From the sequence record PV662128.1: DNA of 64,000 nucleotides, one strand, 5' to 3'. Positions 8,976 through 60,577 of this stretch are shown piece after piece (position 1 is the first letter of the stretch; each line of letters begins with the position of its first letter). The notes below the pieces were generated by a model. The model was not told where the DNA came from, searched no databases, and was given only the letters and a program-made list of their open reading frames with translations. Both the position numbers and the translations under genes were made by a program.

Positions 8976-9458
8976 ATGAAGCTAGTTAATCAAAAAGTTT
9001 ATATCGTTAAGCCAGGCGATACGCTGTCGGAGATAGCAAACCATTTTTGTGGGGCTCCGGCCATCGGATACGATATAGCTGAGGACAACGGTATAGTTAA
9101 CGCCGGACTCATCTATCAAGGGCAAAGAATCTGGATAAGGGAGGAATTCCTAAAGGAAGAATTTAAGGGCGCTCCTAATGCCCAACCCAAAGAAGAACCT
9201 TTCAGAGAAGGGCAGCATGTTCAGATCACCCCATCGGGTAAATTAACAAGACTGGATCTTCATGACTTGTGTTGGAATACCGAACCATTAGCTAAGGGTT
9301 TCTTCGTGATTGTCGAGATACATCCAAATAAGACAGAGCTTTTAGTGCAAGATAATAAGAACCATCATTATTACTTCAATCTAAATGAATTGAAGGAACT
9401 TGTTCGGGTTCGTGGGGCGATAGAAATTTCCCCTAATCGTTTTATGCCGTTTAGCTAA
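8976..9458 (+). CDS. LysM-domain protein
   Basis: N-terminal YIVKPGDTLSEIA...NGIVNAGLIYQGQRIWI. Confidence 0.85.
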   Translation: MKLVNQKVYIVKPGDTLSEIANHFCGAPAIGYDIAEDNGIVNAGLIYQGQRIWIREEFLKEEFKGAPNAQPKEEPFREGQHVQITPSGKLTRLDLHDLCWNTEPLAKGFFVIVEIHPNKTELLVQDNKNHHYYFNLNELKELVRVRGAIEISPNRFMPFS

Positions 9459-14686: not shown

Positions 14687-14716
14687 TATTCCTCTACCCA
14701 CGTGGGTAGAGGAATA
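14687..14716. terminator. intergenic stem-loop
   Basis: TATTCCTCTACCCA-CG-TGGGTAGAGGAATA followed by T run. Confidence 0.75.
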
Positions 14717-14815
14717 ATAACGCTTTTTTATTTTTTAAGGTTATCTCACTCATGGCTAAAATTTATTTCACTTACTCTTCTATTGTATAGTAGAAACGCT
14801 TATGGGGAAATAGAA

Positions 14816-15784
14816 ATGCCGAAAATTAGTGGCTACAAAGAACATCCGGTAATAAAAAACCTTTTCATCCATCCTACGGAAGATAATCACGTCCTGTATG
14901 TTAGGAAGAAAAAAGTATCTCGGATAAAGACCCATGTCGGTAAACGCGGATATGTGATTTTTACTATGTGGTTAAATGGGAAATCCAAGGGTTTTCGCTT
15001 CCACAAATTGAAAGCTGAAACGTATCTCAAGAAACCCAGTTCAGACCACACCCTAGTTGTCAATCATAAGGACCATGTTAAGATCAATAACGATCTCGAT
15101 AACCTAGAATGGGGGACTCAGAAAGAGAATGTCGATCATTCATTAAATATCCGTCAAAAACTTTTTCCCCTCTATCGGATAATGGATTTGACTACGGGGA
15201 GATGGTGTACGGCCGGCAGTCGTAAAGGGGTGATAGAAATGCTAGCTTGCACCCACCGACAACTCTCTAACCATATTAAAGACCCTCGCTATCCATTGCT
15301 CTTCAAGTGGGAGGTAACAAGGAGTTCCACTTGGAATCTTTCAAAAGAGGATGTCGGTAGGTGTAATCCACGAGAGCTTCTTCCTTACGTGGTAGAAAAG
15401 AATGGCGTCGTTTTTTACCTGGCTACATTAGTTGAAGTTGGTGAATTGACAAAGATTACTAAATACACGATTACAGTTGGTTTAAAAAATCAGCCGGTTC
15501 TGCATGCCAAGGGATTCAGTGTTCGGTTCATTAATTCCTATGAAGAATGGATGAAAACTGTTATTGAGAAATCTTATATTGATACCATGTTGAATAGAAG
15601 TAAAGGAAATAAAAAACAGATTGAGGTAATAAACGCTCTTACGAAGGAAAAAACCACGCTGAACGGAATTATAGAGTTAATGGAGTTGACTAATTATTCA
15701 CGATCTACCATCGACCGGGCAATGAAAAGTATGCGTGAAGACGGATGGGTGACTTTCAAAAATCTAAAGATAAGGTTTATATAA
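14816..15784 (+). CDS. free-standing HNH homing endonuclease
   Basis: FHKLKAETYL..VVNHKDHVKINNDLDNLEWGTQKENVDH; C-terminal NUMOD/IENR1-like repeats; start refined to ATG 14816. Confidence 0.88.
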   Translation: MPKISGYKEHPVIKNLFIHPTEDNHVLYVRKKKVSRIKTHVGKRGYVIFTMWLNGKSKGFRFHKLKAETYLKKPSSDHTLVVNHKDHVKINNDLDNLEWGTQKENVDHSLNIRQKLFPLYRIMDLTTGRWCTAGSRKGVIEMLACTHRQLSNHIKDPRYPLLFKWEVTRSSTWNLSKEDVGRCNPRELLPYVVEKNGVVFYLATLVEVGELTKITKYTITVGLKNQPVLHAKGFSVRFINSYEEWMKTVIEKSYIDTMLNRSKGNKKQIEVINALTKEKTTLNGIIELMELTNYSRSTIDRAMKSMREDGWVTFKNLKIRFI

Positions 15785-17472: not shown

Positions 17473-17506
17473 CTACTCCTACGTCCTTAACGGGGCGTAG
17501 GAGTAG
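17473..17506. terminator. intergenic stem-loop (CTCCTAC family)
   Basis: CTACTCCTACGTCC-TTAAC-GGGGCGTAGGAGTAG. Confidence 0.75.
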
Positions 17507-17569
17507 TTCGTTAATTATAACTGACTTTTTTAATATATAACCACCAACGTTCATTTAGGACATAACACC

Positions 17570-28854: not shown

Positions 28855-28913
28855 TACTGGCGCTCCGTATTATTAGGTCAATAGCGTTTTTCATAGAATC
28901 CAAGAGGTAAACG

Positions 28914-35444: not shown

Positions 35445-36509
35445 TTATCTTGGAAATTGTTCTGGTTCAATTTTTTTGATGAAGTAGTTTTTATACATTC
35501 CGTTGTTTTTATAAGACCGGTTCATGTTAGCCGAATTAGTTCCGAAATTGGCCAGTTCAATTGTTCCAGTCAGTCGAGTGACACACTTCGTGCGTTTGTG
35601 TGTTAACTCCCAGGTTACCCTATCCGATCTATTTGACTTCCTACCAGTTCTATCATAAGCGTAGTTTCTGATCGCGTTTATCAAATCCTGATCGGGCTCT
35701 TTATAATACTTAGTGTATTCTTCCTTGCTCACTTCCTCCCACTTACATCCTTTGTGAGTTTTAATTTTACCAATCCTTATGGCGTGAAGGTGGCGATTAT
35801 CTAAACCGAATTTCTCACACTGATCTTTACCGCAAACATATATCACCCTTTTCTTAAATCCTGGGATATCAATCACGGTACCTCTCATAGGGATAACGAA
35901 AGGATGTGACAAATGCTTGTGGGAAACAAGGAGATTATTCTCTTTAGCATGTTGCTTGTTTTGGGCGGGGGTAACCCACTCTAATGATTCAGTATCGTTA
36001 CAATGCTTTCCTTTTAAGTGGTTTACTTCAAGTTCGGAATAATCGTAAAGATTAAGTTCTTCTGGTTTTGGTATCCAAGACGAACCCACCATCCTGTGAA
36101 TCATCATTGTGTATCCATTCATCATATACACTTTATAACCGTAATGATTAAGCGTACCCTTGACTAATTTGTATGTTCTTAGATTAAAGACCCTACCTTT
36201 GTTGCTAACCCAAATATAGGAAAATGCTCTTGGGTTTTTCTTATTGATATTAAAGTTTTTCGGGCTATAAGGGAAATAACTTGCCGGCACCCAGTACTCT
36301 GATTCTGGGTCCTCTCGTAATAATTTCGTTAACTTGGTATAATAAGCTTTTTTACGTTCTTCATCCGATAAGAGATTCAATAAGGCATTGGCTCTTTTGC
36401 CCATTGCGTCAATAATGGATTTATATTCTTTAACAAATAATGGGAGGTTTTTCCTAGCGATTTCGTCCCATTCTTCTTCGGTTCTTATTCTCGGAGGTCT
36501 GATTTTCAT
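35445..36509 (-). CDS. free-standing HNH homing endonuclease
   Basis: WVSNKGRV, IHRMVGSSWI, EVNHLKGKHCNDTESLEWVTPAQNKQH; start refined to ATG 36509 after GGAG. Confidence 0.88.
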   Translation of the reverse strand: MKIRPPRIRTEEEWDEIARKNLPLFVKEYKSIIDAMGKRANALLNLLSDEERKKAYYTKLTKLLREDPESEYWVPASYFPYSPKNFNINKKNPRAFSYIWVSNKGRVFNLRTYKLVKGTLNHYGYKVYMMNGYTMMIHRMVGSSWIPKPEELNLYDYSELEVNHLKGKHCNDTESLEWVTPAQNKQHAKENNLLVSHKHLSHPFVIPMRGTVIDIPGFKKRVIYVCGKDQCEKFGLDNRHLHAIRIGKIKTHKGCKWEEVSKEEYTKYYKEPDQDLINAIRNYAYDRTGRKSNRSDRVTWELTHKRTKCVTRLTGTIELANFGTNSANMNRSYKNNGMYKNYFIKKIEPEQFPR

Positions 36510-36514
36510 GGTTA

Positions 36515-36558
36515 CACTACTCCAAATTACATTATCTCTCATATAATAAGGAGTAGTG
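36515..36558 (-). promoter_or_regulatory. RBS-occluding hairpin with TATG late-promoter core in loop
   Basis: Minus strand CACTACTCC..TATTATATG..GGAGTAGTG-taacc-ATG; 9-bp stem covers GGAG. Confidence 0.65.
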
Positions 36559-45616: not shown

Positions 45617-47062
45617 ATGCAACCTACTAATATTACGTTATTGAACCCAAACAAAGTGGCTTGGGCTCTCATGAAAGCCGTGACGTCAACAGACGTCCAT
45701 GAGGGGATGACCAACAACCTTCATGAAGATGGTTTATACTCTCCAACAATCTTCGGTCGTGTCGGTACCGACCAACGAGATAAAACTCAATCTTACATCA
45801 ATGTTAAGATTCCTGTCTTCAACCCGACTTATTTTAAGGCTTTGATTGGGTTAAAGGGTTTATATCTCGGAATAATCAAAGGGACGGAATACGCCCTTTG
45901 GGACGCATCAGAACGCGACTTCATAAAATCAAACCTCCTGGAAGGAGAAACCGGCTACGGTTTCTTTATGCGTCACTTTTACGACTTAGAACCTAAGTTA
46001 AACGAAAGTTATAAACGCAAACAGCGCGTAGAACTCTTTAATAAATTTAAAGACATCGCGTTGACTAAAAACATTATTGTGCTGCCGGCCGGTATTCGTG
46101 ATATCCAGGTTGAACCCAACGGCCAGATCGTGGAACCTGAAATAAATGATTTCTATCGTAAACTGATCTTCCGTAGCCGCAGCGTGGTTATCCAGGAAGG
46201 TGAAGAAGACAACCCGATTTACGATAACATCCGTTGGGCGATTCAAAGCGTGTTCAACGACATCGACGATTATATCTTCCGGCTGATGGAAGGTAAGCGC
46301 GGATTCTTACAGCGCCGAGTCTCAACTCGTGGTGTTGTCGGGGGTACTCGTAACGTTATTACCGCTCGTAAAGTTTCTGTTGCTGATGCGGATGATGATA
46401 ATGGGGTTGACGTCAACACCACAGATATCGGGATGTATCAAGCGTTGCTGGGTTTCCAATACGTCGCGCGATATGCGTTACTTAAAGGCTTCTTAAGCCG
46501 CGTGTTTACGGTAGGGTCAAGTACAGCTAAACTCGTCGACCCCAGAACGTTTGAATATCAGTACGTGGAAGTCGAGAGCAACATTGTTGACAAATGGTTG
46601 TCAGCCGATGGACTCACCGCTTTGTTCAACGGATTCGGTACCAGGCACTTGCGGCATAAACCGATCAAAATCAACGGCTATTACATGGGCCTGACCTATG
46701 ATGACGGTAAATATGTCAAGTTACTCGGTGACGTAACCGAACTTCCTCCTGGGTTTGATAAGAAGTTCTGTAAGCCGTTAACTTACATGGAACTCTTCTA
46801 TTTAAGTTGTGTCGAAGAAATAGAAAAGAGGATGCTTCAGGTTACCCGTTATCCGATTACTGGGATGGGGTCCATCTATCCTAGCTTCATCAAAATCAAA
46901 ACAACGACTAACGCCCAAAAAAGAATTATTTTAGATGATTACTGGGAAGAAGGTTATCGTTGCACATACTACCCAGTCCGAGAAACTAAACCAGATTATT
47001 TCGACGCCATGAGTGTCGATGGCAGTCGGTTAGGTTTATTGGGTGGGGACTTCGATGGCGAT
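45617..47062 (+). CDS. rpoC: virion RNA polymerase beta-prime subunit (phiKZ gp180-like), exon 1
   Basis: GLYSPTIFG, VLPAGIRD, KRGFLQRR, ends in catalytic GGDFDGD; spliced product predicted 537 aa. Confidence 0.9.
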
Positions 47063-47113
47063 TTTTGAAAGTATGTGTTTTGATTAATGCAAGAGTGAAT
47101 GGACCGTCTAAAT

Positions 47114-47141
47114 CTCTATTATATGTGGATTTATAATAGGG
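47114..47141 (+). promoter_or_regulatory. RBS-occluding hairpin with TATG at the loop edge
   Basis: CTCTATTATA-TGTGGATT-TATAATAGGG, 10-bp stem over the AGGG SD of the intron HNH. Confidence 0.65.
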
Positions 47142-47148
47142 GGTTTTG

Positions 47149-48423
47149 ATGGAACGTTTTATTAAGTTTCAAGGCAAATCTTTGGTTGTGTCGGACCAAG
47201 AAATTTTTGATATTCATAAGAAGAGACGCATTCCTATTTTTCAAAAAAGCAACACTGAAAAATATTTCTTTCTTGATCTAAAAGACGGAATTAAGAAAGT
47301 CGACTATGGTTTATTCTTACTTTTCATGGACAAAAGGTTTTTTCTGCCATTTGATCTTTGGGAGAAAGTAAAAGTCGATTTACTTAATGACAAAGACGGA
47401 TTTACGCGATCTAATTTGTATTTGGTTTATCCGGAAGAAACGATTGAATATCCAGATAAACCCGGTTACAGTTACATACCCGGGTATGAGCTAAACGTTA
47501 TTAACCGCTCAGGAACCGTTTACCGGATCCCCGATGGGAAAGAGTACTTACCGTCCGTTTCTGATAAGAAAAAGAAAGAGAATAAAGAATACGTTTATAC
47601 TTTGGTGAGAGTTAACGAGGGTAAAGTCACAGCTAGAGTACTTCATAGACTTCTAGCGATAACTTTTAAAAACCCTCCTAAGAAATACCCTAAGTTGGTA
47701 GTCGATCATTTAAATGGTAAAAAGTGGGATTACAGACTCTTAAATTTGGAATGGGTTTCTTCCGCAATAAACAATTTAAGGGCTGTTAAAAATGGATTGA
47801 GGGAAGACGGGTTTCCTATTCTAGTTAAGGATAAGAAAACCGGTAATATTTCTGAGTATTTCAGTCTGACTGAATTCGCCAGGTGTCTTAAAACACACCC
47901 CCAATGTGTGGTGAACGGTAAAAATAACCCAAACCAAACAATGATAGGGCGATACATCATCAAAGATGTCGATGATGATAGACCTTGGGAATACTTCGAA
48001 AATATCCCTCTTAATCGAGAATCGGTTAAACTTAAAGCCAAACATGTTATCACCGACGAGATTTCGTTTTACCCCAGTTTTAAATCGGCCTCTAGACTCA
48101 CCAACACGACCCAAAGTATGATTATGAATTACTTTAAGGCTAAATCCGAACCCGCAATTATCAACGGGTACGAGTGGAAGCTAGAAACCGACGACTCCCC
48201 ATGGTTCTCGTTTTCCCCATATCAAATTGAAATTTATAAGCGTGGGTTACATCGTCACACACGCGTTTATAAAGTAAGTAATCTGATAACCGGGGAGAAA
48301 TGGGTCGAGTACGGTTGGAAAGGCATATCGGCTATTTCCGGTGCGAATAAAAGGACCGTAATCAATGCCGGGATCAACTCCACAATCCTTAAAGATAAAT
48401 TTAAACTTGAAATATTGCATTAA
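47149..48423 (+). CDS. intron-encoded HNH homing endonuclease
   Basis: LHRLLAITF, VVDHLNGKKWDYRLLNLEWVSSAINN; three C-terminal NUMOD-like repeats. Confidence 0.88.
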   Translation: MERFIKFQGKSLVVSDQEIFDIHKKRRIPIFQKSNTEKYFFLDLKDGIKKVDYGLFLLFMDKRFFLPFDLWEKVKVDLLNDKDGFTRSNLYLVYPEETIEYPDKPGYSYIPGYELNVINRSGTVYRIPDGKEYLPSVSDKKKKENKEYVYTLVRVNEGKVTARVLHRLLAITFKNPPKKYPKLVVDHLNGKKWDYRLLNLEWVSSAINNLRAVKNGLREDGFPILVKDKKTGNISEYFSLTEFARCLKTHPQCVVNGKNNPNQTMIGRYIIKDVDDDRPWEYFENIPLNRESVKLKAKHVITDEISFYPSFKSASRLTNTTQSMIMNYFKAKSEPAIINGYEWKLETDDSPWFSFSPYQIEIYKRGLHRHTRVYKVSNLITGEKWVEYGWKGISAISGANKRTVINAGINSTILKDKFKLEILH

Positions 48424-48799
48424 TAAACACATCTCAATAGTCCCACCAGACGAGAAATCTCTGGTGCGTATCTCTACAAAGTGCTGGTAAACCCACAAAA
48501 GTTCTACGCCTAGAGATAGGAGCCGATAAGGCAGAAACAAGGTAGAACCTGGTCTATGCGAAACAATATAGCTAAGGACCGTTAACAAGGGGCGCTCAGC
48601 AGCCAGGCTTTCTTAATAAAAGAAAGTAAGGTTCAACGACTAAGACCTAGCCAGTCTGTACTCTTACTAAGGAAGTGAGGGGAAACGAAGAGAGACCTAA
48701 GTCGGGCACTAGTCCGATACGGTTATGATATAGTCTGCTCCCTAATAGCACTAGGGCGGGTGTCTTAGCACACCGGGTACTGGAGTACCGGACAACAGG

Positions 48800-48967
48800 C
48801 AACTTAACAGTAACTCCATCAACGGAGAGGATGCTATTGCTGAAGCTAAAGCTTTAATGGGCAGACGCGATTACTACATCACCGGCACAGGACAATTCCT
48901 TTATAGTCCAACGGTGGAACCTCACGAATTCTTATTCCGAAATCTCAGTAACGGACTCAACCTATGA
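48800..48967 (+). CDS. rpoC: virion RNA polymerase beta-prime subunit, exon 2 (55 aa)
   Basis: QLNSNSINGEDAIAEAKALMGRRDYYITGTGQFLYSPTVEPHEFLFRNLSNGLNL*; stop overlaps next ATG (ATGA). Confidence 0.85.
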   Translation, partial: QLNSNSINGEDAIAEAKALMGRRDYYITGTGQFLYSPTVEPHEFLFRNLSNGLNL

Positions 48968-51900
48968 GCGTATTATACCAACAGTTCTTCCGTAATTTTG
49001 TTCTTAGGAAAAAACAAGAAATTACAAATCCTAAGTTTCACCATCTGACGGATATGGTGTTGCCGAGAGAATCGGTAATGATGTATCTACCGAAGACGCA
49101 AGAAGATATCGGCCCAAGTACCGAGGAGCCCTTAATAGGGACTTACCCTGATGGGGTTAACATTTATTTCAACAGTCTTTATATAACCCCCATCGGAAGA
49201 ACTCGACCCGTTCCCTTTAACGAAAAGCAATCTATACAGCTTTATCGTAAAAGCCATTTCAAATACAACTGGGCGAGGACGCTGTCCAACTACCTGAGCC
49301 GTCGTCAGGAACTATTGGTAAACAACATAGCGATGGGGCCTCATCGTCACCGTTATGTCTTCACTCGTTTTGTTCAGTTTGAACGAGCTTATAACCAACT
49401 GGCTTCCGGGATCGAAGCGGTTAAACAAATGAGTAAGGAAACGACCCGATATCAGTACTGGCGAATAGAACTTCCTCCAAGCGTCCCCGATTATCGTCAG
49501 CTACTGGTAGCGGTCGATCATTATAAGAAGGCGTTCAAAGACGGTGTTTATACTACCACTGACAATCAGGCGGTACTCCCATTTAAGGGTTACGGGTCTT
49601 ATTGGATTATGGACTGGTATCTCTTCTTGATAGGCGAAAAGAACTACAGTCTGTTTAATCGCTTAGATAAAGAAGAAATGGATAAACTCCACATCATCTT
49701 TAGTCATAATGGGCTCAGCTGGGTAGTTAATCTCGGCATCGTCTCTCAATGGATGGAAGAACTTAACGACAAGCACGGCAATCCCACCAGTATGCGTGTT
49801 AACGCGGCTAAACGGTTCCTGCTTGGATTTAGGGCTCTGATAGCGGGCGGCACGCTAAGTGAAACCATAGAGGAGAAACCTCATGCCGCAGAGAATGTCG
49901 GATTGGGTACTGGAACGCCAGAAGAGGAAAGAAGAAGCCAGGAAGTTAATAAGGAATCAGAAGAAGAACCGCTGGATCTCGATGAGTCTGAAGAGATTAC
50001 TGATCAGTCTGTTACTATGCTTGATCTTTTCATGGGCAGCAAAAAGGCTGATACAGAATCTGATGATGACCAAGGAGGAGAGGATCCAGGAGGAGCTGAT
50101 GAGAATCACGGAGAAGAGTGGGCAGCAGCGGTCGACGATGAATTACTTTATAACGCCGAAACGGAAGGATTAGGGGAAACCAAGAAAGTTATTTTCAGTA
50201 CCCCGGAATCCGGCATCCTGAGAGCCTTAGAGCAAAGAGCCAAGGCCGGGACATTAACTGTTGCGGAACAACGTTATTACACTAATCTCGCGCAATCATA
50301 CAAAACGATCAAAATGCCTAACGGTGAAAGTCTTGAAAGTTTTGTTAAGATTGATCAGGCCAAACTCCGCCACCTTCCTGCTAAAATTGCTCCTGAGATG
50401 AGAGGGATCATCGACCCTTCTCAGCTACAAAGTAGAGCGACGAATCTTAAAACGAAATACTCTGAAGAATTCCTTAACCGGGATATCGCTGGGATGATTC
50501 TTAACGTTCAGAACGCCGGTATCGTTTTAACCGATCTGAAACGTGAACGTATTGTCAATGCGGAATCAGCTTACGACGTTTATACAATGAACGTTCATCC
50601 GGTTGGTGGATCGCCTAAGACCGCGATGTTCCGTATCCCCAAAATTGACAAAGACGGAACCTTCACTGTCGATGGGGTAAAACAGCATCTTCAACTTCAG
50701 CGTATGGAAATACCGATTCGTAAGATAAACTCGGAGCAGGTTGCTTTGACGAGTTATTATGACCGCAAGATCATGATGTCTCGTTCTACCAAGGTCGCCG
50801 ACGATTACGGATTGTGGCTGAACAAGCAGCTTATTCTGTTGGGTGAAGCCGGTAAAGTATCTGGGGTGTTGGGCGATGTCTATAATCGTAGTTACGCTGT
50901 TCCTCGTACTTATTCTGCGTTAGCCAAACGGTATCGGTCATTAAAGGCGGGCGGGATTGAATTCAACTTCGATCTTTCTAGTCTTGTTGGATCAGAGAAA
51001 GAAATCAATAAGCTGATTTCTCCTAACTGGGTTCCGGTGGCTAAAGAAGGTGACGACTTCATCTTTATGGATGATGGCGGTAACCTTTATAAAGATAAGA
51101 CGCACATTGGTTCTTTCGAAAGCCGCTGTGGAATTGACACGACGAAGGCCCCAGTCGATATCGTTACGGTGAATGTAAACGGATACGCTTTCCCTATCGG
51201 GGTAGTGCTCGCTTACTACTTCGGATTCGACGAACTTCTTAAAGCACTCAATGCTGACTATCGGACCGTTCCGGCCGGTGAGAAAGTTCGGATGGGTCAG
51301 GACGAATACGCGATAACCTTTAACGATGAAACGCTCATTTTCAACAGACGAGATAGTTTAACCGCACTCATTATGGGTGGGTTCCGGAAGTTAGCGAATT
51401 TGAGTAACTTCTCTCGCTATGACCTAAACACGAAAGGCGTGTGGGTGCCGGCTATCGGGGATAAGAAAGTCAAACCAGGTCATTTTGATGAAATGCGTTT
51501 GATGTTCGAAATGTTCATCGATCCTATCACCAAATCCGAACTGGTTAAAAGGGGTTATCCGACCGAGCTTCATTATCTCATGATCGAAGGCGTCAAAATG
51601 CTGAACACCGATCGGACTGCTCACGAGATAGAATTAACTGAGCAACGTTTCGTTGGGTATGAACGTTTCGCCGGACGGGTCTATAACGAAATTGTTAAGT
51701 CGACTCGTCAATTCAGGAATAAAGGTAATGACAAACGTTTCACCTTCGATATGAACCCTGAAGCGGTTATCATGAGTATCATCACCGATACGAGTGTAAA
51801 CCTAGTTGAAGAGGTTAACCCCATCCACGAAATCAAAGAACAGGAAGTTGTTACCTTTGGTGGCACTGGTGGGCGAAGTGAAACGACAATGGTCAGACGT

Positions 51901-52111
51901 ACACGTGGTCAGCAAGAGAACTATGCTGGGGTTATCTCCGAGGCTGGTAAAGACTCCGGTAAAGTTGGGTTCGTGAGTTACTTAACGAGCAACCCTAAGA
52001 TCGCCGATTTCCGTGGTAACGTCGACCTAAGCATGCCTGACACTCTGAGCGGCAGACTGTCGGTAACATCCAACCTTTTAGCTCACTCGACCTCCGATGA
52101 CCCCAAACGGT
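48964..52111 (+). CDS. rpoB: virion RNA polymerase beta subunit (phiKZ gp178-like), exon 1
   Basis: VTFGGTGGR, SEAGKDSGKVG, SDDPKR motifs; spliced product predicted 1418 aa. Confidence 0.9.
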
Positions 52112-52125
52112 TAACTGTAATATTT

Positions 52126-52157
52126 TCCTGAGTACAATATTATGTTGAGACTCAGGA
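52126..52157 (+). promoter_or_regulatory. RBS-occluding hairpin with TATG in loop
   Basis: TCCTGAGT..TATTATG..ACTCAGGA covers AGGA of the AGGAG SD before ATG 52168. Confidence 0.65.
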
Positions 52158-52167
52158 GCAAATTAAG

Positions 52168-53220
52168 ATGAAACCAATTGAGTGTAAAGATTTTCCAGGG
52201 TATTACGAGATACCCAATTTTTCCAAGTACTGCATTAATAAAAAATCAGATATTATTCATAAACGCAAAAACAAAAAAATCAGACAGTACGACGTTAAAT
52301 CTTCTGTGACGTCCAGGCCAGAAACCGGGTGTTATAAAAGAGTGACGATGTATTCTGATGATAAAAAACTCCACGCCTTTTCGGTCCATCGGTTAATGGG
52401 CTTGGTGTTTAAACATCCTGGTGCCGGGTTTCACTCTCTACAGGTCCACCACGGAGATGGGATAAAATTTCATAACGACATCGATAACTTAGAATGGGTT
52501 ACACCCAAGACCAATATTGTTTTAGCAAACGATTATTACATGGGTAAAGCTAAAATACCCGTCCAAGCTAGGTCTAAAAACGGTGAAGTTCTAAATTTTT
52601 CTAATCTAAGTGATTGTGCTAAATTACTCGGGATCCATAGGACAACCCTTATCTCCAGATTAAGTACGTTTGGAGAAAAGTTTGTTCACCCAGAGGGCTA
52701 TCAACTGAGGTACGGAAATTCCGATAAGCCATGGGTTGCACCAGACGAAGAATCAGCTAAGGACTTAGATGAGTTTTACTCGTCACCCATTTTGGTAAAA
52801 AATCTCAACACTGGCGAAGTGAGGGAATTTAAAACAGCCAAAGGCGTGATGGAATTAATAGTAAGATCTCCGTCAAGCATAAGTACTTTGAGTAATGATT
52901 CGACTCAACCCATTGTGATGGGTAAAGATAACGTACCGTACATTCTCATAAAAAAATATTCTGGGGTCGATTTCAGGAGAGTTGACGATCCAATGAATGA
53001 TTTTGTCGAACAACAGACCAATACCAGAACGGTAGTTGCGACGAATGTTACGACTAATGAGAAGAGAGTTTATACGACCGCGCAGGCGTGCGCATCTGAT
53101 TTTGGAATAGGGAAAACTACACTTAATTGGCGTCTTAAGAAACCCATCCCTGGTGTTTTCGACGGATGGATTTTTAGATATTACGAGGCCCGTATGGGAG
53201 GAAACACCCATACGCAATAA
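52168..53220 (+). CDS. intron-encoded HNH homing endonuclease
   Basis: NUMOD4-like N-terminus FPGYYEI, VHRLMG, VHHGDGIKFHNDIDNLEWVTPKTN; three C-terminal repeats. Confidence 0.88.
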   Translation: MKPIECKDFPGYYEIPNFSKYCINKKSDIIHKRKNKKIRQYDVKSSVTSRPETGCYKRVTMYSDDKKLHAFSVHRLMGLVFKHPGAGFHSLQVHHGDGIKFHNDIDNLEWVTPKTNIVLANDYYMGKAKIPVQARSKNGEVLNFSNLSDCAKLLGIHRTTLISRLSTFGEKFVHPEGYQLRYGNSDKPWVAPDEESAKDLDEFYSSPILVKNLNTGEVREFKTAKGVMELIVRSPSSISTLSNDSTQPIVMGKDNVPYILIKKYSGVDFRRVDDPMNDFVEQQTNTRTVVATNVTTNEKRVYTTAQACASDFGIGKTTLNWRLKKPIPGVFDGWIFRYYEARMGGNTHTQ

Positions 53221-53545
53221 TCTTTAATTGTTCTGGGACGATCTCGAAGACTCTCATACCAAAGCGGAATACGAAAGTATAGACGTCATGGTTTTAAAAG
53301 TTGAGAAGAGAGACGATCTAGCAGCGAAGCACCTACGTATCTTCGAGAGAAGAGATAGGGTGAACGTTCAACGACTATGGGTGAAACTCCCAGTAGAGAG
53401 TACATGATGTAATCTCGAAACAGGATTCCCTTCGAGTGTGCTGTAGAAGCACAATACTCATGGGTGAAATATAGTCTGCTCCCTACGGCGACGTAGCGGC
53501 GGGTGTCATAGCACACCGGGTTGATGGAAGCAACTGGACAATAGG

Positions 53546-54654
53546 CACTTTTCTCAGGGGTTCAGCAAAGTCAGGGGGTGTCTGCGACTAACTATCAGAC
53601 CAACTGGTTACGTACCGGGGATGAATTGGTTATCGCACACCGGACATCCGAGCTTTATTCTAAACCTGCTAAGCTCGATGGTAAAGTTATAAAGCTTACT
53701 AAAGAAGGTTTAGTGGTCGAATACAAGGATGGAACGACGGACAGTTACCCATTGGGCTTAACCATCGGTAGTGCGTCTGGTGAATTCCACAGACACACAA
53801 GAGTCACTGATTTAAAAGTCGGTGATAGTTTCAATGCCGGAGATATCATCGGTTGGGACGAAATGTACTTTGAAAGGGATTTGGCTAACCCTAATCAGGT
53901 GGCGTGGAAATGCGGGGTAATGGTGAGGATTGCCTTTGTTGAGAATCAGTTCACGTTTGAAGACTCCATTGAGGTTTCTAAAGACTTCGCTGAGCAGACG
54001 AAAACGCCTTATTTGAAGTTGAAAGAATTCTCTTTAGACTTCGAACAAACTCTCGTCCCTCACGTAGAAGTCGGGTCGGAAGTCGACATGGACGCGATTT
54101 TATGCTCGATAGAGGATCCCCACGTAAGTGGTCTGGACGATTCTGATGACACTTTCTCAGGATTAGAGCGTTTAGGGGTTAAACAAATTCGGTCTAACCA
54201 TCATGGCCGTGTTGTTAAAATTGAGTGTGTTTATAACGGTTCAATTGAAGACATGTCAGATAGCCTGAAAGGGTTTGTGACTAAGTTAGATAAAGAACGT
54301 CAGCAGCTCAATAAGGTCACTCATACCGGGATCGTTAACGGTAACGTTGGGGGAAACACGTATGTTAAGAAAGCCAGTGTTGAACCTAATCGGGTTACGG
54401 TTAAAATCTTTATTGAGGATCTCAATAGCTCCGAAACCGCCGATAAATTTGTGGTCGGTAACCAGATGAAAGGTACCGTGGGGAATATCGTGAACTACAC
54501 AATGCGTACACTGGATGGTCGTATTGTCAAGATTCGATTCTCATTTAAATCGATGTTCAACCGCATGGTTCTGAGCTTACGAGATAAAATGGGTATCAAT
54601 GAAGTTAACGCCAACCGCACTTCGGCAGCAGTTAAAGCTTTCAGAGGAAAATAA
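53546..54654 (+). CDS. rpoB: virion RNA polymerase beta subunit, exon 2
   Basis: LRTG, FTFEDSI, ADKFVVGNQMKGTVG RpoB motifs; frame open back to the splice site. Confidence 0.88.
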
Positions 54655-60458: not shown

Positions 60459-60577
60459 TATTTTATGGTAGGGGTGCTTTAGGCACTCCTGCCGGACTCA
60501 TCATGCATTTTAATTCAACACACAAAAAGAATGAGACCTGTACTATTAAAGTAAGAACAATGATAGGAGTTGTTTTC

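Follow-up and report, generated by a model that had tools for sequence, protein, structure and literature searches.

How might an endonuclease gene that lies within an intron of a phage RNA polymerase gene be kept silent on the long RNA of its host gene and be translated from a late transcript of its own? This question is raised by four HNH endonuclease genes on a 64,000-nucleotide stretch of sequence record PV662128.1 (the window), whose positions are used throughout and equal record positions minus 186,000. The window matches Raoultella phage VB_ZK_P1 (PV662128.1, 257,087 bp) at 100% identity; this relative of Klebsiella phage Miami (Miamivirus) has phiKZ-type multisubunit RNA polymerase genes. 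An earlier note on this DNA had proposed that the HNH genes share a control switch, consisting of a hairpin that occludes the ribosome-binding site (RBS) and carries the TATG core of a late promoter in its loop. Here, we present evidence that RBS occlusion is, with high probability, a conserved trait of HNH cassettes. The complete switch, in which occlusion is combined with a late internal start of transcription, is the best single explanation of the locus, and one towards which we lean with modest confidence.

Both precedents on which the proposal drew hold. The late promoters of phage phiKZ have a TATG core with transcription beginning at the G, and all four bases are needed, although they are not sufficient (PMC4666361); the non-virion RNA polymerase binds the core through its beta-like subunit (PMC4666361; PMC12809450). 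In the T4 scheme, an RBS hairpin and an internal late promoter are combined in the control of I-TevI (td intron), I-TevII, I-TevIII, segB and Aeh1 mobE (PMC2988022).

Hairpins in the leaders of the HNH genes

The four genes and the leader structures that precede them are the following.

47149..48423, plus strand: intron-1 HNH homing endonuclease gene, 424 aa; Pfam HNH_3; PHROG 59
47114..47141, plus strand: leader hairpin 1; -10 kcal/mol, z -2.7
52168..53220, plus strand: intron-2 HNH homing endonuclease gene, 350 aa; Pfam NUMOD1; PHROG 59
52126..52157, plus strand: leader hairpin 2; -15 kcal/mol, z -3.5
35445..36509, minus strand: free-standing HNH endonuclease gene, 354 aa; Pfam NUMOD4; PHROG 59, E 7e-20
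36515..36558, minus strand: leader hairpin of the free-standing HNH gene; -21.2 kcal/mol, z -5.8
14816..15784, plus strand: fourth HNH endonuclease gene, 322 aa; Pfam HNH_3; PHROG 59
14759..14815, plus strand: leader of the fourth HNH gene; -9.3 kcal/mol, z -0.95; alternative weak pairings over GGGGAAATAGAA

An HNH nuclease domain with NUMOD modules was confirmed by Pfam (HNH_3, NUMOD1 and NUMOD4 among the four proteins), the HNH_3 match of the intron-2 protein lying just under the curated cut-off (23.7 vs 24.8 bits), and PHROG 59 matches all four proteins with E values of 7e-20 to 3e-26. The start codons used are those of the GenBank coding sequences. EL, FishSpeaker and PDCC-1 have homologues of the intron-1 protein in introns of their RNA polymerase genes, and homologues of the intron-2 protein include PhiPA3 gp210 and 2050HW gp101. 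Scans of IMG/VR with the four proteins yielded no usable relatives, three being without a match and one matching distant fragments only. Because the four proteins are mutually 21-33% identical or have no detectable similarity, their leaders are not recent duplicates of one another.

The stems and TATG positions that the earlier note had described were confirmed in the sequence at all four genes, although the description needs amendment at two of them. Hairpin 1 has a 10-bp stem including one G.U pair (47114-47123 / 47132-47141) and an 8-nt loop. The first four bases of the Shine-Dalgarno sequence (SD) of the intron 1 gene, AGGGGG (47138-47143), lie inside this stem, and the AUG is at 47149; its TATG (47122-47125) straddles the 5' arm and the loop and thus stands at the arm/loop junction, not in the loop as had been claimed. 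In intron 2 the TATG (52141-52144) does occupy the loop, which is 16 nt long and closed by a stem of 8 bp (52126-52133 / 52150-52157), or of 9 bp with a terminal U.G pair. This stem covers the SD, AGGAG (52154-52158), upstream of the AUG at 52168, and its 5' arm holds the stop codon (52129-52131) that ends the upstream exon frame. The free-standing gene likewise has its TATG (36543-36540) in the loop, here of 26 nt, with a 9-bp stem (36558-36550 / 36523-36515), the SD GGAG in the 3' arm and the AUG at 36509. As had been noted, the intron 1 and free-standing sites share TATTATATG, of which the window holds exactly these two copies, and intron 2 has TATTATG. The fourth gene had been credited with a weaker version of the layout: a 7-bp stem (14778-84 / 14809-15) can indeed be drawn and a TATG is present, but the stem is not part of the minimum-energy fold.

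When local folding was compared with 200 dinucleotide shuffles, z-scores of -2.70 (intron 1), -3.54 (intron 2), -5.76 (free-standing) and -0.95 (fourth gene) were obtained. Three of the hairpins are beyond chance; that of the fourth gene is not.

The free-standing hairpin, with its arms CTACTCC / GGAGTAG around the 26-nt loop, has the arms of a family of intergenic hairpins found at approximately 17480-17520, at 36515-36558 (minus strand) and in other intergenic regions. Genome-wide, the CTACTCC and GGAGTAG arms each occur in 10 intergenic regions, against about 1.5 expected.

RBS occlusion in the genome and in homologous leaders

The strength of occlusion was expressed as an opening cost, the free energy required to make the segment from SD to AUG single-stranded in a context of -100 to +40, and was calculated for every gene of the assembled genome (290 genes called, as in GenBank, of which 289 were ranked). 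Against a median of 5.7 and a 90th percentile of 9.6 kcal/mol, the HNH genes cost 17.6 (free-standing, rank 4), 17.0-17.1 (intron 1, rank 5), 10.4 (intron 2, rank 23) and 9.4-9.8 kcal/mol (fourth gene, rank 28). A measure based on pairing probability placed them at ranks 4, 6, 18 and 32. By rank statistics, the chance that four HNH genes would all fall within the top 28 of 289 is about 7e-5.

The claim that these hairpins occlude the RBS is thus borne out: they are unusually strong for the genome, and homologues with unrelated stem sequences retain occlusion. The homologue set comprised 26 HNH leaders, taken from phages (phiKZ gp56, gp72 and gp179; two EL genes; two FishSpeaker genes; PDCC-1, 2050HW, PhiPA3 gp210, HHBS8_1, phiKp_32, BUCTxx100 and KPN8) and from 12 metagenome contigs found by protein searches. 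Their median cost is 10.1 kcal/mol, with 14 of the 26 above 9.6 and 24 above 5.7 kcal/mol. The stems differ in sequence, as in TTCCTGAGT/ACTCAGGAG, ATTCTCT/AGAGAAT and CAATCC/GGATTG, or, in the intron-2 family, CTCCTTAA/TTAAGGAG. They are not positionally homologous among leaders, and the comparison was anchored on the conserved block.

Of the covariation in related phages for which the earlier note had proposed to look, the free-standing stem gives an example. In phiKp_32, which carries the closest relative of the free-standing HNH gene (85% amino-acid identity) and was the sole match when the 71-nt leaders were compared with the phage collection by blastn, all nine stem pairs are kept, with one compensatory change (A-U to G-C) and one wobble change (C-G to U.G), and TATTATATG is retained.

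Two further observations assign the hairpin module to the open reading frame (ORF) cassette instead of the ribozyme. The hairpin is also present on free-standing genes; and in each intron, leader and ORF are enclosed by a helix between the stretch just past the splice site and the end of the ORF. In intron 1 this helix (47073-47089 / 48418-48432) covaries, being kept with different sequences in metagenomic homologues, and leader and ORF are missing together from an ORF-less relative of the intron in phiKp_32. RBS occlusion as a conserved trait of HNH cassettes is well supported by these results.

A late-promoter-like block within the leaders

A late-promoter consensus for VB_ZK_P1 was sought independently of the HNH genes. 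The most enriched 8-mer of oriented intergenic regions is ATTTTATG, which is found in 10 regions vs 0.5 expected; of its 17 genomic copies 11 are intergenic, each of these being followed within 150 nt by a gene on the same strand. The genes behind it include those for the major head protein, four tail-fibre/tail-spike-like proteins and two virion structural proteins. The related ATTCTATG acts alike (3 of 5 copies upstream of genes), and two other 8-mers differ, with 0 of 12 copies of GTTTTATG and 0 of 5 copies of AATTTATG being intergenic. From this distribution we infer that ATT(T/C)TATG is the late-promoter consensus of VB_ZK_P1, and TATG-type late promoters seem to operate in this phage. 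Examples of the consensus in the window stand at 28885-28892 (minus strand) and at about 60461-60468. A review has described the late promoters of such phages as unpredictable by bioinformatics, with nothing conserved in phiKZ beyond the four bases (PMC7598289).

TATG is present at all four HNH sites, and the leaders contain the following promoter-like elements.

47118..47125, plus strand: late-promoter-like block ATTATATG, intron 1; predicted +1 G47125, 24 nt before the AUG
52137..52144, plus strand: late-promoter-like site ATATTATG, intron 2 loop, weaker; predicted +1 G52144, 24 nt before the AUG
36547-36540, minus strand: ATTATATG, loop of the free-standing hairpin; predicted +1 G36540, 31 nt before the AUG
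14779-14790, plus strand: conserved block TTCTATTGTATA, fourth gene; ends in A; placed by anchored alignment

Three of the four sites match ATT(T/C)TATG at 7 of 8 positions. The only difference of ATTATATG from the consensus is at the variable -4 position, and that of ATATTATG is at -5. The ATTATATG 8-mer has 4 copies in the genome, 3 of them intergenic, and the ATATTATG 8-mer only two; the intron-2 homologue L036 carries ATGTTATG at the equivalent place. At the fourth gene, the earlier note had taken the TATG at 14801 to be the element, but that sequence (14801-14804, within CGCTTATG) fits the consensus poorly, and the conserved element is instead TTCTATTGTATA.

This last assignment comes from an alignment of leaders anchored on the block itself, since MAFFT placed the window sequence 2 columns off. 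Thirteen HNH leaders could be aligned on ttcTATTnTAT(G/A), their best-conserved part; they come from several phage genera and from no fewer than 3 HNH subfamilies. The distance from the predicted +1 to the AUG is 22-38 nt in these leaders, mostly 23-27 nt, and the TAT(G/A) is for the most part in the loop, where pairing places no constraint on it. A late promoter at the arm/loop junction of three of the HNH hairpins is plausible.

The genome also holds a second promoter-like class, similar to the AT-rich motifs known from the early promoters (those of the virion polymerase) of jumbo phages. Here a T-run leads into CTA(C/T)ATTAT, 36-51 nt ahead of the start codon; in the window the element precedes the genes that begin at 8976, 16450 and 33211, and further copies are found in the rest of the genome. 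Between the fourth HNH gene and the gene upstream of it, a terminator-like hairpin (CCTCTACCCACGTGGGTAGAGG) with a T-run is present at 14694-14740, and the sequence after it, TTTTTTAAGG, resembles the upstream half of this early-like class, so that the fourth gene may have an upstream promoter of its own. A thymidine kinase gene lies downstream of the fourth gene, according to neighbour annotation in relatives.

Predicted effect of starting the RNA at the G

If the candidate promoters were used, the RNA would begin beyond the 5' arm of the hairpin. The opening cost from SD to AUG was compared between long RNA and RNA started at the G for 108 TATG sites located 10-120 nt upstream of start codons. 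The relief so obtained has a median of 0.15 and a 90th percentile of 3.6 kcal/mol. At the HNH sites it amounts to 11.8 (free-standing), 8.7-8.9 (intron 1), 5.6 (intron 2) and 6.0 kcal/mol (the remaining site), corresponding to ranks 2, 3, 5 and 6 of 108, with intron 2 at rank 6. All four would be placed among the first 6 by chance with a probability of about 3e-6. By comparison, ATT(T/C)TATG sites before other genes, structural genes included, give a relief of -1.3 to 4.1 kcal/mol. In agreement with the earlier proposal that an RNA begun at the G would escape the hairpin, the opening cost of HNH leaders started there falls to 3.7-8.1 kcal/mol, around the median of 5.7 for the genome.

The geometry of a promoter-like TATG inside the RBS hairpin is specific to the endonuclease genes and to two small genes outside the window. 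The latter are adjacent genes of unknown function (record positions 153379 and 154080) with sites at L008:3325-3332, before the gene at L008:3379, and at L008:4054-4061, before the gene at L008:4080. Their relief values of 7.7 and 18 kcal/mol rank 4 and 1 of 108, and their proteins have no match in Pfam.

The interrupted polymerase genes

Two adjacent polymerase genes, one gp180-like, with the catalytic GDFDGD motif, and the other gp178-like, are interrupted in VB_ZK_P1 and are arranged as follows.

45617..47062, plus strand: exon 1, virion-type RNA polymerase subunit (phiKZ gp180-like); PHROG 2986, E 4e-200
47063..48799, plus strand: probable group I intron 1; without counterpart in Miami; Rfam RF00028, 34.5 bits, E 4.5e-6
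48800..48967, plus strand: exon 2, gp180-like gene; 56 codons, aligned to Miami L001 2464-2631
48964..52110, plus strand: exon 1, large RNA polymerase subunit (phiKZ gp178-like); PHROG 3148, E 0
52111..53544 (boundaries +/-1 nt), plus strand: probable group I intron 2; Rfam RF00028, 49.9 bits, E 1e-10
53545..54654, plus strand: exon 2, gp178-like subunit; starts with the conserved GCN (Ala) codon in ALFSGVQQ

Both genes are uninterrupted in Miami, KPN8, YC1 and BUCTxx100, which have neither insertion; that of intron 2 is also found in phiKp_32, and VB_ZK_P1 has both. Exon 1 of the gp180-like gene, ending just past the catalytic motif, is collinear with the intronless Miami gene as far as 47061/62, and the stop codon of its exon 2 overlaps the start of the next gene (ATGA). 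Exon 1 of the gp178-like gene terminates at ...DDPKR and is collinear with Miami through 52109, which places the junction at 52110 or 52111. With 47063-48799 and 52111-53544 (within 1 nt) taken out, the reading frames are again those of Miami. In each insertion the leader and HNH ORF are near the 5' end (in intron 1 within a peripheral loop), followed by a ribozyme core, at ~48425-48799 in intron 1 and ~53221-53544 in intron 2; a P1-like pairing joins 52105-52113 to ~53223-53231 in the latter. The RF00028 gathering score is 50, so that a scan of the window at the Rfam gathering threshold gave no match; both introns score below it and were found by E-value thresholds. As to the ends expected of group I introns, intron 1 has U47062 as the last exon base and G48799 as its own last base, and intron 2 has a terminal G; retention of the conserved Ala codon puts G at -1 of intron 2, whereas U at this position would turn the Ala into Ser. 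On this evidence the two insertions are probable group I introns, and without them the exons join in frame.

The intron 2 junction (52109-52112, 53543-53546) is ambiguous by one base. In five homologues the 5' junction is conserved as GGT, and at the 3' junction G is followed by a GCN codon for Ala. The exon may end in G, contrary to the usual pattern of group I introns, or in U, in which case the conserved Ala of RALFSG is replaced by Ser. The ORF-less group I intron of phiKp_32 (L002:2460-2836), homologous to the core of intron 1 (window 47063-48799), is inserted 6 nt upstream of the intron 1 site (DFD|GD vs DFDGD|Q), and the catalytic motif of the polymerase gene thus hosts two neighbouring insertion sites. 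Similarly, the intron 2 site (52105-52111), after DDPKR, is three codons downstream of the site at which the introns of PhiPA3 (gp210) and 2050HW are inserted, after DD (L014, L015); both sites belong to one conserved beta-like motif, the counterpart of HDDANRALMG in E. coli.

A model for the control of the HNH genes and its alternatives

We propose that each HNH gene has a compact control module directly before its start codon. On long RNA, whether polymerase pre-mRNA, excised intron or read-through transcript, a pyrimidine-rich anti-SD arm would pair with the SD region; on the computed opening costs, ribosome loading on such HNH RNA is poor. For the intron genes, by analogy with the T4 td/I-TevI precedent, poor loading would also keep ribosomes off the P1/internal-guide strand that overlaps the end of the ORF, leaving splicing of the essential polymerase genes undisturbed. 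A block, ttcTATTnTATG, which spans the last part of the 5' arm and the first part of the loop, matches the late consensus ATT(T/C)TATG and would act as a phiKZ-style element, bound at -3 to +1 by the non-virion RNA polymerase, with initiation at the G. We infer late starts at G47125, G52144 and G36540. The resulting transcripts would be without the 5' arm; with their RBS accessible to a normal degree, they would allow the endonuclease to be translated; those of the intron genes would also lack the 5' strand of P1 and serve as mRNA only.

Several observations weigh against this model. In the G-started isoforms the SD still forms weak alternative pairings, which account for the residual cost of 3.7-8.1 kcal/mol. 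The HNH blocks deviate from the strong consensus at -4 or -5, and TATG is frequent in phiKZ, where it is necessary but not sufficient (PMC4666361). Occluding hairpins without TATG are found at phiKZ gp179 and gp72 (loops of 9 nt and 4 nt), at PhiPA3 gp210 and in the leaders L033, L037 and L038, and phiKZ gp56 has neither hairpin nor TATG. The block ends in TATA in FishSpeaker, PDCC-1, L030 and the fourth window gene, and since phiKZ needs all four TATG bases (PMC4666361), such sites may not fire. Conservation of the block may be partly inherited and not selected, as homologous leaders share ancestry. The opening-cost background relies on gene starts from a simple gene caller, and the costs of the homologues were compared with the genome of the window phage. 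A phage nucleus, if one is built, would keep ribosomes from the nascent pre-mRNA and so weaken the protection of splicing as a rationale; a BLASTP search with phiKZ gp54 found no chimallin homologue in VB_ZK_P1, which says little about nucleus formation. Finally, because PhiPA3 gp210 and several metagenomic homologues have no TATG, the hairpin alone may suffice in some phages. Occlusion may then be ancestral and sufficient by itself, the internal promoter being a lineage addition or an inherited remnant.

These observations feed the chief rival of the proposed switch, in which the hairpin is a constitutive attenuator that permanently damps HNH translation, limiting nuclease toxicity or interference with the ribozyme, and no internal promoter exists. 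A low level of endonuclease would arise from breathing of the hairpin or from RNA processing, and the TATG block would be kept as anti-SD arm and inherited with the cassette. The TATG-free hairpins and the four leaders with TATA variants listed above agree with this explanation, as does PhiPA3 gp210, which is made and active in infection (PMC11620839) without a TATG. It accounts less well for a TAT(G/A) that lies mostly in the loop, unconstrained by pairing, yet is invariant in 13 leaders at 22-38 nt from the AUG; for the identity of the block with a late-promoter consensus derived independently from structural genes; and for the position of the TATG exactly where truncation drops the 5' arm, which puts four sites in the top 6 of 108. 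We regard permanent attenuation as unlikely, though a serious contender. Alternatively, the block could be a protein-binding operator and not, or not only, a promoter, recognised by an autorepressing endonuclease, as with I-TevI, or by a phage translational repressor. The T4 I-TevI operator does overlap its late promoter (PMC2988022), and the conserved block, at ~12 nt with a conserved ttc upstream, is longer than the 8-nt promoter consensus. The block is, however, common to HNH proteins that are 21-33% identical or not detectably similar and that cut different targets, so that a common operator is unlikely; moreover, judged by eye, it is unlike the intron-1 insertion site in the intronless Miami allele. 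An operator is accordingly improbable.

The ATG within TATG could also open a short upstream ORF whose translation melts the 3' arm and is coupled to the HNH start. Such ORFs do end in overlap with the HNH start in both introns (TGATG 47147-47151, ATGA 52168-52171), and the ATG at 36542 shares the reading frame of the free-standing gene. Their ATGs are not preceded by an SD, however, the homologues are inconsistent in length (1 to 7 codons), frame and end point, and a transcript begun at the G has no such AUG; this explanation is very improbable. The intron upstream ORFs comprise 8-9 codons (window 47123-47151, 52142-52171). That the layout is a coincidence, with AT-rich leaders folding by chance around a frequent 4-mer, might be thought from the 72 TATG in 16.3 kb of sense-oriented intergenic DNA, from the occurrence of TATG 11-50 nt before the start in about 16% of genes, from the failure of TATTATATG with one mismatch to be over-represented in the window and from the z-score of -0.95 at the fourth gene. 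Set against the chances of about 7e-5 (top 28 of 289 for occlusion) and about 3e-6 (top 6 of 108 for relief), and against recurrence of the layout across 26 homologous leaders, coincidence is scarcely credible.

Three other roles for the hairpin were considered and set aside. It is not a part of the ribozyme, being present on free-standing genes and missing from the ORF-less intron, and it is not an intrinsic terminator, most leaders having no U-tracts. Coupling to termination in the upstream exon frame fits intron 2 only, the intron 1 stop being 46 nt upstream of the hairpin.

If the proposed switch operates, a single 40-nt element would encode silence on host-gene and intron RNA and activity on its own late mRNA, which would explain how the nuclease is off during splicing of the polymerase pre-mRNA and on late. 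The two small genes (record 153379 and 154080) would then imply a more general late translational switch. A further step, which we take only tentatively, is that HNH cassettes of phiKZ-like phages travel with a portable timing module (anti-SD arm, ATTnTATG and SD arm) that non-virion polymerases from many genera would recognise. Concrete and cheap targets for mutation are provided by the stem, the TATG and the spacing between elements. In addition, the analysis offers a readable late-promoter consensus for Miamivirus-like phages, of a kind thought hard to obtain from sequence alone.

Comparison with known systems

Like PhiPA3 gp210 and phiKZ gp179, gp72 and gp56, the intron genes of VB_ZK_P1 are HNH genes in putative group I introns of phiKZ-type polymerase genes. 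PhiPA3 gp210 has 28.7% identity to the intron-2 protein, an intron site three codons upstream and a leader with an SD-occluding hairpin; its hairpin and those of phiKZ gp179 and gp72 differ from the VB_ZK_P1 leaders in having no TATG. Intron-encoded HNH endonucleases of jumbo phages serve as weapons between co-infecting phages, as described for gp210 (PMC11620839), and that paper (Birkholz et al. 2024) makes no mention of a promoter, hairpin or RBS (PMC11620839). By ONT-cappable-seq, the phiKZ introns gave no evidence of splicing (PMC10914365). No expression control of the present kind was described in the jumbo-phage intron-endonuclease literature searched. The candidate promoters resemble the phiKZ late promoters in their TATG core, which here is enriched upstream of structural genes, and differ from them in that an 8-nt consensus, ATT(T/C)TATG, is predicted in place of four bases only.

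The closest parallel is T4 I-TevI. In both systems the endonuclease gene lies inside or beside an earlier-expressed host gene, the RBS is sequestered by a hairpin on long transcripts, and a late promoter (a candidate one here) lies inside the hairpin region, so that late transcripts are, or would be, without the 5' arm; in both, the ORF, placed in a peripheral loop of the intron, extends at its 3' end into ribozyme structure (PMC2988022). The endonucleases are of the HNH type here and GIY-YIG in T4, and the host genes encode RNA polymerase subunits here and functions of nucleotide metabolism in T4. The promoters differ more fundamentally. In T4, host polymerase with gp55/gp33 recognises TATAAATA at about -10 as the late promoter, whereas the candidate ATTnTATG overlaps +1 and is of a type read by a phage multisubunit polymerase without an exchangeable sigma factor. 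Since this type is recognised at -3 to +1, overlapping the start site, the whole promoter could fit at the arm/loop junction, inside the RNA hairpin. T4 regulatory logic would then have arisen on unrelated transcription machinery, and the layout of the VB_ZK_P1 genes is plausibly a new variant of the I-TevI scheme, built with an unrelated promoter type that overlaps its own start site.

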